Positions 567 to 56,464 of a DNA stretch of 56,464 nt are shown here, piece by piece. The notes beneath the pieces were generated by a model that was given only the letters and a program-made list of their open reading frames with translations, was not told the origin of the DNA and ran no database searches. Made by a program: the position numbers and the translations under genes. Positions within the stretch are counted from its first letter, which is position 1. Each line of letters begins with the position of its first letter. This DNA comes from Polymyxa betae A26-41 (taxonomy: Eukaryota > Protista > Endomyxa: Phytomyxea): positions 1 through 56,464 of the forward strand of contig RBZT01000281.1 in NCBI GenBank assembly GCA_003693705.1. The letters are read 5' to 3'.

Positions 567-3500
567 CTAATGCACATGTATTGAATGTGAAGTCCAGAGT
601 GCTTGATCTTGCTTGATGCGGCCCTCGAATCGGCGCGCTATTAACATAACATTTTCTACTTTGCAGAATCTGATAATTTTATTGACAGATTGCACGATAA
701 TACTTGCTGAACGTCTCCGAATACGAGTTCACAACACCTTGCGATTCCAATTTAACGTAGAACGAATGCAATGCCTGCGCTTGATCGCGAAGATCGCGTG
801 ATGCCTGGCATCACAATTAACCAAATGTGAACTCAAGAAAATGAACTGGAACGTACTGCTACCAAAGTCTGTGGTCGAGACAATTCTTGACCGTGACTTC
901 TGATAATCTCGTATTTGTTGTATAGAATCTTCATAATGGCGGCGGCGAGCTCCGGGAAGATTCTGGCTAATAGAGCGTTGGTGACAGTGTTAGTATAATC
1001 GAACTGTTGCAGAGCAGGTTGGACATCGGCGGATCCCAACGGCACGAACCCGGTCGAAGTCTGCGAACTGAATGTCGCAATCTGCATCACAAATCGATTT
1101 AAAAGTCCATTAAGCAGACAATACCCAAAACATACAAGAAGAGCTTCGTCGTAACGAACAGCATGATTAGCATTGAAGAACATTGCAAGCTGAACTAAAG
1201 AGCTCAGAGCATCCCGCAGTCTGAAAACAAAGAGCATTAACGTTGAGACAGCAAATAATAGAACGAATGAGCAACCTTGGATTGAGATTGGTGCTATCTA
1301 GAACCGCTCGAGCACGGTCAAGCGCCATTTGCCGAATGGGTGACGACAACGACAACATGTGAATGTCGATAAGCCGAATCAATGTGCGAGCATATTGTTC
1401 TTGCGGCTGTTGTCTGTTAACAAACAGCAAAAATGATTTCCGGGCGAATGTCCTACCTGAGGTTCGGCGAATTGATAGAGCTGGCAGGCAACGAGGTAGG
1501 ATTGGTCATTAACGGCGGTTTGTGCTGCAGTCAAGCACAGCTTATCCACCCGGTCGTTCGTGACATAATCGCGAGCCAGACCGGAATCCTGAAAAACGTT
1601 CGTCAGCAAAGAGTTGCCATATCAAGGCGTGCTCTGCAACCTTGTTGACGAGCTTCCGAATGGTTTCAATCTGATCCATCGGGGGTGCGTTTCCAATCAG
1701 CATTCTGACAAACAGATGATCGAACACGTCCGGATGTCTATCGGCGACCAGAGCGAGGTATCGCATGGCCGTCTCAACATCAACCAGCGATTGCGGATTG
1801 TCGATCACATAATCTCTCAGAATTATTTCAATGTCCGCCGAGATCGTCTGCCTCTCGGCCTCTATCCAAGAACCGTGAATCACATTCGAAATATTTGAAG
1901 AGGTAGCATTACCTTGGATATCACGAGGAAGCAACAGGCCTAGTTCGTCAAGAGCGATAGCGAAGTGCACAGCATCTGTACGGAACTTGGAATTCGTGAG
2001 AAGATACACGACAGCGGCGGGAAACTGCAAGCTGAGCAGCAGAACCTAAGCGAATGTAAGACTGTGAGAAATGTGAGAAATGGTGCATTGTACGAGGAAG
2101 TAGAGCAGCGGGTCCGTTTGATTGCGCGAGAAATGCTGTTCATAGCCGCGAATTGACGACTGGAATTCTCTCAGGTTCTCTTCGAAATTGCCATTTTTCA
2201 ACAATTGCATCTAGGCATTAGTTTACAGCAAATTCGACGGTGATGGAGCACGATTACCGAGAACCAAAGATAGTCTGTGTGCGAAGGCGTGATGTATCGC
2301 CGAAACTAAACCTACGATTTAGAATCGAGCGAATATAAGGGAAAACTGAGCGCCTACCAGATTGCGGTATTCAGGATGCTGTCGATATTTCATGTTGTCG
2401 TAGGTCTCTAAAGCGCCTCCGGAAATGATATTGTAGACAGCGACGGCGAACGGGTCGGATTCGTTGCGAACGTACGAATTGTAATCCAGCGTCAGCGCCT
2501 TCAGCTGTTCGTCGTTCAGCTGCTGATTCCCGATGCAGGTCGTCAGCAACGACAGCTGCGTATTCTCCGGATACATTCGGCTCGCCTGAAACGAAACGTG
2601 AATTCGCATCCAACACCAGGATTGAGGAATACTGGACCATGGCGGCGAGATCGACAGCTTCGTCAATAGCACCGGATCGCAGGCAGTAGAACAGCTGCGG
2701 CCAAAGCGGAACGTCATTGAGCATCTCCATTCTCACTATAGAAAGCTGTTAAGGCGAGATTGGCGAAACGCTTCATAGGCTGACTGAAACTCGGGTAGCG
2801 CTGCTTGAAAATGATCGTCTTGATGAACGCCCGGATATGATTGGCGATGCCCGGCGTGCCGCCAATCCGTGCCTTGTCAAGATGTGACGACATCCAGTCC
2901 TGGAATTGAACTTCCAAAAAATGAATCGAAGCTTTGAGCAGGTCTGGATAGGACGCCGGCGCTATTCGCTGCTGCAACGTCGCATACGCAAACCTAAACC
3001 GGTTCAGAAACAATTTCAGGAAAAAAACATGCAAGAACGAACTCTTCAACGAGCATCCATAATTCGAGAATCGAAGTGTCTTTGCTAGAGGTCTGCTCGT
3101 TGAACGACGTGATCGCCTTCGCGAACAGCTGAGCGCAATGGCCGCGTTTCTGCAGCACTTCTTGAGCAGCTTGGCCATATTTAAGCTCTTTAGTAACGGG
3201 GCCTGGAGCCATCAGCGCCGTCGTTTGCTGCCCTACATACAAGCGTCACAGCCTGATAGAAATCGAGCAATTCGTTCATACTTGCAACAAGCGGCTTGGC
3301 AACGATCTGCTTTCCGGGTGCCGATTCACTGAAGTGAACCGTCAAGTTTCGTAACAGCCTGTTCTTCTGCGTTTGCCAAACTTGATCCAGACGGGCATTA
3401 TGGCTATCAATGAAACCTTGAAGAATCTGAAGCATGCAAATGAGGAATATTTTAAACCAAGTTTCCATAAATCGTTCGACCTTGCCGTTATTCTCTTCAA

Positions 3501-4436: not shown

Positions 4437-5428
4437 ATGGCTCAATCGGAGGAAGCCGGTGCCCCATCGAACGCCGATATCATACGGCAGGTACACAATC
4501 GGGCTCCAGCATTTTCGATGTCTAATCACCAGCTTACAGCAAGATGAGATCCAGGCTGAGATCGCTTCTGAATCGGCAATAGTGGCGCCACTGGCCCCGA
4601 TCGGCGCTTTAACAAAGCAAGAGGTTCGTGAGCATGCTCTCAAAAAGCTGGAAGTATATAGTCTTATTGCAAAATGCGCTGCAAGTTATCAAAGTTCGTC
4701 CTTAGGAATTGGAATCAGCTTACGAAGGAGTTTATTGCATTCGCGGCGACGGCAATTGCTTCTTCCGCTCCTTCTTGGTCGGCATGTTTATTCGATTTGT
4801 TGAAGATCCAAAACTATCAGATCGTCTAAATTCAGTGTCCAAGTTTATAACCGAGTCCAAAGAATTACTAATGCAAGTCGGCATGCCCGAATTCGCAATA
4901 GAGGACTTTTGGGAGGAATTTCAAAACCAGCTATCGGTAAGCTGGCTCGCAGATCATCCGATTCTGGCGAACTAAACAAGTTGCAGAATTTAAAATCGGA
5001 TAGCTTAACGGCAGACGACATTGTTGATATTTTCAATCAGCAATCTGTATCGGATTATCTTGTCATGTACGCCAGATTTTTGACCTCATGGTATCTGCAA
5101 GTAAATTCTGAGCAATATTTGCCATATTTACAAGACTGTGCCACAATGCAGCAGTTCGTTCGTTCCGAAGTCGAGCCGATGGGGAAGGTATAAATATTTA
5201 AAGCCAAGAAGTTTTGCTCTGTATTGAAGTTTAATTTCTTAGGAAGCCGATCACATTCACAGCATAGCGTTGACACGCTGCCTTGATATCCCAATCAGGA
5301 TTGAGTATCTGGACAATAGTCCAGGTCCTATTTCACATGTACTGTTTCCAGATGAAGAGTCTGATCCGGTAATATGCCTGTTGTACAGACCAGGGCATTA
5401 CGATCTTCTTCAGAGAAAACCGCGATAA
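4437..5428 (+). CDS. OTUB1: Otubain-family ubiquitin thioesterase (peptidase C65), multi-exon
   Basis: Catalytic IRGDGNCFFRSF, YLVMYARFLTS, FVRSEVEPMGKEADH, IRIEYLD and LLYRPGHYD motifs are joined by short GT-AG introns. Confidence 0.92.
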
Positions 5429-54668: not shown

Positions 54669-54742
54669 AGCCCGTGCCGGGACTCGAACCCGGAGCCTTG
54701 AGATTAAAAGTCCCACGCTCTAACCAATTGAGCTACACGGGC
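54669..54742 (-). tRNA. trnK-UUU: tRNA-Lys (anticodon UUU)
   Basis: GCCCGTG TA GCTC AATTGGTTA GAGC G TGGGA CT TTT AA TCTCA AGGCT CCGGG TTCGAGT CCCGG CACGGGC T folds as a cloverleaf. Confidence 0.97.
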
Positions 54743-54752
54743 GTCTGCTGAC

Positions 54753-54904
54753 TGTTAGCAGATGAGCGCTGTTAGATCAATCTCGAGATATCGATAGCGT
54801 TGACTCACGCTAATTCAACCGGAAGCATTGCCTTCCGCTTGCATACTAAGAAATAAAACACTTCTTCAAACACATTCCAGTTCAAAACCCTCTCCCGTCT
54901 AACA
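54753..54904 (+). mobile_element. Solo LTR (152 bp) with 5-bp TSD CTGAC
   Basis: Termini TGTTAG...CTAACA form a perfect 6-bp IR; internal AATAAA; flanked by CTGAC at 54748-54752 and 54905-54909; 151/152 identical to 56252-56403. Confidence 0.9.
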
Positions 54905-55244
54905 CTGACGATGTCAATTGACGAGCGACAAACGTGTTTACAGGAAACAGATTCGAGGCGGCGAACAACATTGTCACATTGCTCTGTTGCGTTATGGATT
55001 GTAAAATCTAAAATCCTTGACGAAACCGAAACTGAAAACCCTTAAAGTCCAGATATTTGCGCCGATCGCAGATTTGGTAGCAACGTCCACGTCCCTGTCG
55101 TACAGCATCACACAAAATCGGATGAGCAGTGCTCATCACGCGCGCAGCGCTTTAGTATCCAGCTGCCCTTACCTAAGGGGATATCACGCAACCGGGTACA
55201 CCGACATCGATGATGGGAATTATTCAAATTGATCAGACGGCGAT

Positions 55245-56081
55245 ATGGGAGCCTATGCCCCGATCATCATCATCTTCGTCACGTATCAATCGCTGCTGCT
55301 GACGATCTTCGCCTTGTTCGTCTATCGGAAATATGACCCGAAGGCCCGTCTCTGGAACCTCATCAACATGATCATGATCGTCTCGGGCCCGATCGGCATC
55401 TCTTGGTACGCCATGCACCTGGAACCAGCAACACCTGAGACCTGCGCTGTCATCATGATGTTCGGTGCCTCGCTCTACCACGTCGCCTACTTCATGATGA
55501 TGGTAGCGTCCGCGCTGCGCATGTTCGCCCTGAATGACCTGCAGGGGGTCAAGAACAAACGGATTGACGGGGCCATCCTCGGCGCCATCTTACTGGACCA
55601 GATCGTCACCATCATCCTGCACAACACGACGCTGACCCCGATCGTGGATACGAACACCGACCAGTGCGCCATCGTCGTAACCAAACTGTTCGCCTGGGTG
55701 GCGTTCGGCATCCCGGTCGTACTTGACCTCGCCATCGTCGCTCGCCTTTACAAGTACCTCGGGGGGGTCTCGGCTCACCATATCGAACGTCTGCTGCGAG
55801 TCATGATGGGGTTTCTGAGCCTTCACGTCGTTGTTGGAGTCACGTACGTGTGCATCGTGATGTTTGGGCTGGTCCCGTTGACGCCCAGCGTCCGCATCAT
55901 ACTGGTCAGCGTACAACTGATCTCCGGCTACACGTCCATGACGTTGCCGCATATCGTCGTGCAGATGTGGCGAAGTTGCGGCTGGTTGCAGAGCAGTAAG
56001 ATGACGGGGAAGAGGACCAACACGGCCGGGTCGAAACCGCTCGCCACCAACACGAAAACGACTGCCGAAGGAAGAGTTTGA
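55245..56081 (+). CDS. Seven-transmembrane GPCR-like protein, intronless, 278 aa
   Basis: Seven hydrophobic segments, with Cys at the start of TM3 (ETC) and in ECL2 (DQC). Confidence 0.75.
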   Translation: MGAYAPIIIIFVTYQSLLLTIFALFVYRKYDPKARLWNLINMIMIVSGPIGISWYAMHLEPATPETCAVIMMFGASLYHVAYFMMMVASALRMFALNDLQGVKNKRIDGAILGAILLDQIVTIILHNTTLTPIVDTNTDQCAIVVTKLFAWVAFGIPVVLDLAIVARLYKYLGGVSAHHIERLLRVMMGFLSLHVVVGVTYVCIVMFGLVPLTPSVRIILVSVQLISGYTSMTLPHIVVQMWRSCGWLQSSKMTGKRTNTAGSKPLATNTKTTAEGRV

Positions 56082-56166
56082 GCTTGACACCACTCGTGTC
56101 GCTTGTAAATAAACTAGCAAATCCGTCAAATTGATAAAAATTGAGCAGCACCAACCCACGGTTGAT

Positions 56167-56240
56167 AGCCCGTGCCGGGACTCGAACCCGGAGCCTTGAG
56201 ATTAAAAGTCCCACGCTCTAACCAATTGAGCTACACGGGC
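56167..56240 (-). tRNA. trnK-UUU: tRNA-Lys (anticodon UUU), identical second copy
   Basis: Same 74-nt sequence as 54669-54742. Confidence 0.97.
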
Positions 56241-56251
56241 TGCTCGATATC

Positions 56252-56464
56252 TGTTAGCAGATGAGCGCTGTTAGATCAATCTCGAGATATCGATAGCGTT
56301 GACTCACGCTAATTCAACCGGAAGCATTGCCTTCCGCTTGCGTACTAAGAAATAAAACACTTCTTCAAACACATTCCAGTTCAAAACCCTCTCCCGTCTA
56401 ACAGATTAAGAGTCCCACTTGCCTCTATTTATAGCTGCGTGGAGTTTCGCTGCACAGACTAGCG
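56252..56464 (+). mobile_element. 5' LTR (56252-56403), half-tRNA-Lys primer-binding site (56404-56418) and start of the internal region of a copia-like retrotransposon, truncated by the window end
   Basis: Same TG...CA LTR, but flanks do not match (ATATC vs GATTA). The next 15 nt, GATTAAGAGTCCCAC, are the reverse complement of tRNA-Lys nt 26-40. Confidence 0.85.

Follow-up and report, generated by a model that had tools for sequence, protein, structure and literature searches.

The right end of contig RBZT01000281.1 of Polymyxa betae A26-41 raised the question of what primes an LTR element whose terminal repeat is followed by the 15-mer GATTAAGAGTCCCAC and not by TGG. The whole stretch of DNA that was analyzed, 56,464 nucleotides long, is referred to here as the window. 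Comparison of the 15-mer with the tRNA genes and LTR elements of the same genome pointed to a putative minus-strand primer-binding site of a ~750-bp TRIM, complementary to a 5' fragment of spliced tRNA-Lys(CUU), and we gave this reading a probability of about 0.78. The features of the window that bear on it were the following.

56166..56241, minus strand: tRNA-Lys(UUU), the insertion target (ARAGORN; Rfam RF00005 at 56167-56240; sequence)
56247..56251, plus strand: ATATC, left copy of the 5-bp target-site duplication, inside the tRNA-LTR gap (sequence)
56252..56403, plus strand: 5' LTR of the TRIM-type element, 152 bp, with TGTTAG...CTAACA termini (at least 43 genomic matches; 13-copy alignment)
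56404..56418, plus strand: putative primer-binding site, complement of spliced tRNA-Lys(CUU) nt 40-26
56404-56417, plus strand: 14-nt core of the primer site, corresponding to nt 40-27
56419..56464, plus strand: first 46 nt of the ~430-nt non-coding internal region, up to the contig end
54753..54904, plus strand: solo LTR belonging to this family (99% identity with the window LTR)
54669..54742, minus strand: second tRNA-Lys(UUU), target of the solo LTR (ARAGORN, Rfam, similarity search)
54748-54752 and 54905-54909: CTGAC duplication flanking the solo LTR

The 152-bp LTR began with TGTTAGCA at 56252 and ended with GTCTAACA at 56403, in the form TG...CA, and the 15-mer directly abutted the terminal CA. 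Between the 5' end of tRNA-Lys(UUU) and the LTR lay a gap of 10-11 nt, the last 5 nt of which were ATATC, and the second tRNA-Lys(UUU) had the solo LTR 10 nt upstream of it. The 15-mer had one exact match in the window and two further matches with one mismatch, while 100 shuffles yielded 0; the two inexact matches were the anticodon arms of both tRNA-Lys(UUU) genes, in which the sole difference between nt 26-40 and the complement of the primer site was at wobble position 34. The first-pass annotation of this DNA had described a non-TGG 15-mer immediately after the terminal CA and had read its reverse complement as tRNA-Lys nt 26-40 with C34, and the sequence at 56404-56418 agreed on both counts.

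A single read joint (X1) running from 54905 to 56252, with CATT between, probably comes from reads of a tandem LTR-LTR arrangement elsewhere and not from a local deletion. One such tandem pair was present on another contig (C390:19536-19844; L021 1501-1809), where two LTRs of the family stood upstream of tRNA-Ala with CCATT between them. The C390 tandem itself points either to more than one insertion at the same place or to an LTR-LTR junction.

In the reconstruction of the window element, a 152-bp LTR stands at either end; the primer site follows the first of these, and ~430 nt of non-coding sequence then leads to a purine-rich tract in front of the second. The ~430-nt internal region recurred on C737, C784, C10, C959, C722, C285, C93, and C147, and on four of these contigs (C959, C10, C93, and C147) it led after ~430 nt to a purine tract and a 3' LTR; on C959 the layout was LTR, primer site, ~440 nt, the purine tract GAAGGGGCG, and LTR. 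No open reading frame longer than 67 aa was found in the window family. The family thus had the features of a TRIM, being shorter than 1 kb and non-coding, with two LTRs and an internal region bounded by the primer site and the purine tract. The first-pass annotation had instead expected a copia element of 4-6 kb with the coding order gag-PR-IN-RT, an order that was absent from the window family and present in the elements on C20 and C607, which share its primer site. It would be very unlikely for the window to hold the 5' end of such an autonomous, hemivirus-like copia, with the contig stopping before gag. The contig does end 46 nt past the primer site, and coding copia families do have the same site; however, those 46 nt matched the internal region of the short element at 96% or more, with the 3' LTR following at the distance given above, no coding element with the window LTR was found among at least 43 LTR matches, and the 3' LTR on C10 was followed by a matching ATATC duplication.

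Target-site duplications of the TRIM were 5 bp long, as for copia. Eight solo LTRs were flanked by perfect duplications (CTGAC, TGGCG, GTGGA, CCATT, CAAAC, ACCAA, ATACC, and AATCA), and 5' and 3' halves could be paired through the duplications ATATC and AAGTA. Contig C10 begins inside the internal region, and its 3' LTR (L013 415-566) runs into ATATC, the arrangement that had been predicted for the downstream end of the window element; by this sequence C10 is likely the other half of that element. The last 31 nt of the window differed from the start of C10 by one mismatch, so it is only the ATATC duplication that pairs the two. In a read contig of run X8, ATATCCAATTAG... followed an LTR end. 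The copy on C959 was rejected as a complete element, as its duplications (AAGTA and AGATT) were mismatched, an N gap was present, and its 5' half paired with the 3' LTR on C313 (AAGTA); the join on C959 is probably a scaffolding chimera.

Two neighboring stretches were recorded alongside these copies. Directly after the 3' LTR on C959, positions 62108-63396 (L031 1309-2597) were very AT-rich, unlike the rest of the genome, and contained a minus-strand Cys-rich open reading frame; given the N gap and the mismatched duplications, this stretch may be a mis-join or foreign DNA. On C737, a short run of TTTAGGG-like repeats was located inside the contig (L032, about 1440-1470).

The search for the cognate tRNA covered the genome of 27.1 Mb in 1001 contigs, which is eukaryotic. 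An uninterrupted complement of the primer site was absent from all genomic tRNA genes; the 20 exact 15-mer sites of the genome included 0 tRNA genes, and ARAGORN in its default mode gave no Lys(CUU) gene there. The default mode miscalls intron-bearing Lys(CUU) genes, which are detected by a similarity search together with the intron mode. When a tRNA-Lys(UUU) gene was used as the query of a DNA similarity search, six UUU genes were recovered along with 11 loci of ~88 nt at 73-75% identity. Alignment of these 11 Lys(CUU) loci revealed a common 5' exon, ending in ...GTGGGACTCTTA, and a 3' exon that opens with ATC, with 13-14 nt of intron in between, and the intron mode of ARAGORN called tRNA-Lys(ctt) with a 13-14-nt intron in 9 of the 11. 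With the intron cut out at the canonical position 37/38, nt 26-40 of the mature tRNA-Lys(CUU) read GTGGGACTCTTAATC, an exact complement of the primer site (15/15). Under canonical splicing the mature tRNA would contain GUGGGACUCUUAAUC, and its exon junction would read ...CUCUUAAUC....

The 15/15 match assumes the canonical intron position; ARAGORN drew the intron one base further 3', which gave C38 and a match of 14/15. The sequences favored A38, by the canonical position, by the A38 of the intron-less Lys(UUU), and by the primer sites themselves. The expectation of perfect pairing with a Lys(CUU) isoacceptor that has an identical stem was therefore upheld by 11 loci after canonical splicing. 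The accompanying expectation of a Lys(CUU) gene containing the complement held in part, as no gene carried it uninterrupted and the match became exact once the intron was removed. Twelve nt of the primer site correspond to the 5' exon and 3 nt to the 3' exon. Because the site spans the splice junction, only the spliced tRNA pairs with the whole of it, and the primer must derive from that spliced form. On the sequences compared here, a 5' half released by the splicing endonuclease and ending at nt 37 would be unable to pair with the whole site. The intron was present in 11 of 11 tRNA-Lys(CUU) loci (e.g., C692:4557-4645 and C664:24039-24127) and absent from the six Lys(UUU) genes. Its sequence differed in the Lys(CUU) loci on C937 and C214, and C649 also held an aberrant copy in which the anticodon loop was duplicated (L086 472-565).

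The same primer site was widespread in the genome. The exact 15-mer occurred at 20 sites, compared with 0 for the reversed control, and allowing up to 2 mismatches raised these counts to 116 and 14, respectively. Another 48 sites differed from the 15-mer at base 15 alone, so that the 14-nt core was present 68 times in total, against 0.2 expected by chance. The exact 15-mer stood directly after five LTR ends that could not be aligned with one another (the window TRIM; C13/C155; C20/C300/C302/C393; C607; and C687), and in a sixth family (C432/C406/C428) the first 14 bases followed the LTR end. At 20 sites, a match on the same strand to RVT_2, the Pfam domain of copia-type reverse transcriptase, lay 2.3-3.7 kb downstream; the genome gave at least 152 RVT_2 matches. 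The C20 element encoded, in order, copia gag, Pol_BBD (Pol beta-barrel), pre-integrase, rve (integrase core), and RVT_2; the C607 element, 5.26 kb long with 88-bp LTRs, had the same domain order; copia gag was present on C13; and C687 was a decayed copy with many stop codons. In the C20 copia (L066 1938-2175), the gag-PR-IN and RT reading frames overlapped by ~240 nt in different frames, which could be a programmed frameshift or a mutation.

Conservation across families, together with the copia coding regions downstream, indicated that half-tRNA-Lys(CUU) sites are, as judged from these sequences, a common copia primer site in this genome and not a peculiarity of the window. Recurrence of the 15-mer in other copies had been put forward as a check on the first-pass annotation, and the 15-mer was retained in 12 of 13 aligned family copies as well as in coding copia families. 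Across the 13 aligned TRIM copies, the whole U5 region was about as conserved as the primer site, and the conservation of the 15-mer within the family therefore adds little. The 14-nt core provides a simple tag for locating copia 5' ends in the genome.

The tRNA that supplies the primer could also be thought of as a half of tRNA-Lys(UUU), bound through a G:U wobble at position 34. Such a primer would match at 14 of 15 positions plus the G:U pair, the predicted duplex (-22.0 kcal/mol) would be just 2.6 kcal/mol weaker than that with CUU (-24.6 kcal/mol), and the 6-7 UUU genes of the genome are identical at nt 26-33 and 35-40. In opposition to this, G stood opposite position 34 in 68 of 68 sites, and Lys(CUU) genes, with 11 loci, outnumber those for UUU. 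The A-type sites, GATTAAAAGTCCCAC, were seven in number, of which six were the tRNA-Lys(UUU) genes and the seventh was on C991; no LTR-adjacent site with A opposite position 34 was found in a check that covered the sites other than that on C991. In retroviral-type replication, part of the primer is copied into the progeny DNA, so regular use of the UUU tRNA should leave A-type sites, which favors CUU. The U34 of Lys(UUU) is also usually heavily modified, which counts against a UUU primer, and we regarded the UUU tRNA as an unlikely primer.

A different objection would be that the tRNA match is incidental, with the 14-mer serving packaging or dimerization, or being a target of silencing by host tRNA fragments, and with priming achieved in some other way. 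Half-tRNA-Lys priming is proposed here from sequence comparison, and the folding predictions spoke for a structural role neither way, as the primer-site region had no significant fold of its own and the U5 region plus primer site had no structure beyond that of shuffled controls (RNA fold). Nevertheless, the 14-mer occupies exactly the position of a primer-binding site, it matches an abundant host tRNA exactly, in a register known from hemiviruses, the sequence beside the LTR offers neither a TGG-type nor a self-priming alternative, and precedents have been published (PMC5445492, PMC10886601, PMC6317226), all of which made an incidental match extremely improbable.

If the 15-mer is a primer site for spliced tRNA-Lys(CUU), the mechanism would follow that of hemivirus-type copia elements. 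The site abuts the LTR and its first base lies opposite tRNA nt 40, with no TGG, which is the hemivirus-like half-tRNA-Lys register that the first-pass annotation had recognized. We propose that mature, spliced tRNA-Lys(CUU) would be cleaved directly 3' of nt 40, within the 3' strand of its anticodon stem, and that its 5' fragment would be packaged. By analogy with copia and Ty5 (PMC1181622, and references in PMC10886601), this fragment would anneal to the primer site, and extension from its 3'-OH across U5-R would yield minus-strand strong-stop DNA, as it does in hemivirus-type copia elements. The A37 of Lys tRNAs is normally modified to t6A, which could hinder this pairing and counts against the proposal. 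The 14-nt core extends no further than nt 27, perhaps because position 26 blocks copying of the primer during plus-strand synthesis. In eukaryotes, tRNA position 26 is typically m2,2G, a modification that blocks reverse transcriptases, and it could thereby determine how much of the primer is copied back into the element.

As a non-coding element, the TRIM would be mobilized in trans, with Gag, reverse transcriptase, and integrase borrowed from a copia family that may use the same primer and, like the TRIM, favor insertion 8-11 bp upstream of tRNA genes. Over 74 nt, the U5 end and primer site of the TRIM shared 78-80% identity with the C432-type copia LTR, while BLAST of the TRIM internal region gave no match in the coding loci examined. 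On C730, a primer site (4794-4808, minus strand) and an RVT_2 match (1621-2349, minus strand) were found with a tRNA at 4979-5050 (plus strand), a spacing that would suit a copia element with a ~160-bp LTR situated ~11 nt upstream of the tRNA.

Insertion of the TRIM family next to tRNA genes was precise. Fourteen LTR copies among those examined were located 8-11 nt upstream of the 5' ends of mature tRNAs (window 54669-54909 and 56166-56403; L005, L008, L011, L016-L018, and L020-L024). Their targets comprised at least 11 anticodon types, namely Lys-UUU, Gly-UCC, Phe-GAA, Glu-CUC, Thr-UGU, Leu-UAG, Leu-CAA, Ala-AGC, His-GUG, and Ser-AGA, with Asn as a further type in a nested case. The U3 end pointed toward the tRNA in 9 of the 14 copies and the U5 end in 5; both orientations being present, a U3 end that always faces the tRNA was ruled out. 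Among solo LTRs with both flanks visible, 6 of 9 were at a tRNA gene, and an Rfam scan of LTR copies without a nearby tRNA detected no other Pol III gene. None of the sampled copies had a Lys(CUU) gene as its target, and in the 10 nt upstream of the 11 Lys(CUU) genes no LTR terminus was found at the end.

The first-pass annotation had proposed that the element is primed by the same tRNA family that it targets, a proposal contradicted by this range of anticodons and by the lack of sampled copies at Lys(CUU). Since insertion takes place at tRNA genes of any type, the Lys primer beside Lys targets in the window is a coincidence without mechanistic meaning, and a link between the identity of the primer and that of the target does not hold. 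Older TRIM relatives with 71-77% identity and decayed primer sites were observed on C391 (L091 7122-7700), adjoining tRNA-Ala, and on C349 (L092 5182-5614), upstream of tRNA-Asp; the position of such diverged relatives near tRNA genes indicated that the targeting habit is old. The fixed spacing of 8-11 bp from tRNA genes in a copia-associated TRIM is more unusual biology than the primer site.

Among the elements with which the Polymyxa family can be compared, Candida Tca2 uses a half tRNA-Arg as its primer. Half-tRNA priming defines the genus Hemivirus (PMC8515867), and hemiviruses, which initiate from the 3'-OH of nt 40 (PMC1181622), include elements such as Drosophila copia, 1731, yeast Ty5, and Volvox Osser (PMC1181622, PMC8515867). 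In plants, the copia lineages Osser/Bryco/Gymco-II and Bianca use half tRNA-Met and half tRNA-Ile (PMC6317226). The Polymyxa elements resemble these hemivirus-type elements in that the primer site abuts the LTR and the proposed primer is the 5' portion of a tRNA, with its end near nt 39-40; they differ in that the established primers are iMet, Ile, or Arg, and in that the Polymyxa window copy is non-coding.

A closer counterpart in primer identity is the FunCo1 Copia clade, which Donnart et al. (2017) reported from 270 fungal species, almost all of them Pezizomycotina, and whose primer site, ATTAAGAGTCT, is the complement of an internal stretch of tRNA-Lys (PMC5445492). Ten of the 11 bases of ATTAAGAGTCT are the same as bases 2-11 of the Polymyxa site, and the same tRNA-Lys(CUU) anticodon loop is involved, whereas the stem part is TCT in FunCo1 and TCCCA in the Polymyxa site, tracking the host tRNA. 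Unlike the Polymyxa family, FunCo1 was reported with neither tRNA-gene targeting nor a TRIM (PMC5445492). Kojima (2024) described Puccinia Copia families and Helenus TRIMs whose primer sites match spliced tRNAs (Tyr, Ile, Asp, and iMet) at the anticodon loop (PMC10886601). As in Polymyxa, the Puccinia sites match spliced tRNAs and are common to Copia elements and TRIMs, with 5-bp target-site duplications (PMC10886601), but none of the four tRNAs is Lys, the one matched by the Polymyxa primer site. The Helenus LTR has a tRNA-like Pol III promoter (PMC10886601), which the Polymyxa TRIM LTR lacks; neither ARAGORN nor Rfam detected a tRNA inside its LTR copies. With regard to targeting, Ty3 and Dictyostelium DGLT-A are LTR elements that integrate at tRNA genes (PMC5911963, PMC5006619). 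They share with the Polymyxa family a very narrow range of integration immediately upstream of tRNA genes, irrespective of tRNA type, but they are Ty3/gypsy elements primed by tRNA 3' ends, in contrast to the copia-type coding associates and half-tRNA primer site in Polymyxa.

The type of priming, the use of tRNA-Lys, the reliance on spliced tRNAs, and primer sites common to TRIMs are consequently all precedented. The combination of primer and target had been offered in the first-pass annotation as possibly novel, a suggestion weakened by the tRNA-Lys site of FunCo1 (PMC5445492) and the spliced-tRNA sites of Puccinia (PMC10886601). Three features may be new: the host lineage, the dominance of one primer across the genome, and its co-occurrence with very precise tRNA-gene targeting. 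In a search of the published literature, no paper was found that describes this combination.

A broader scenario, which we put forward tentatively and consider doubtful, is that a copia radiation outside Pezizomycotina, together with its TRIM parasite, settled on the 5' half of spliced tRNA-Lys(CUU) as primer, and that in at least one of its lineages Ty3-like integration, at 8-11 bp upstream of tRNA genes of whatever type, arose independently. If true, this would give a copia-type counterpart of Ty3 or DGLT-A, with a 14-nt boundary set by the modified base 26. The Polymyxa elements add a well-documented, genome-wide, multi-family case to the copia lineages that prime from halves of tRNAs other than iMet.
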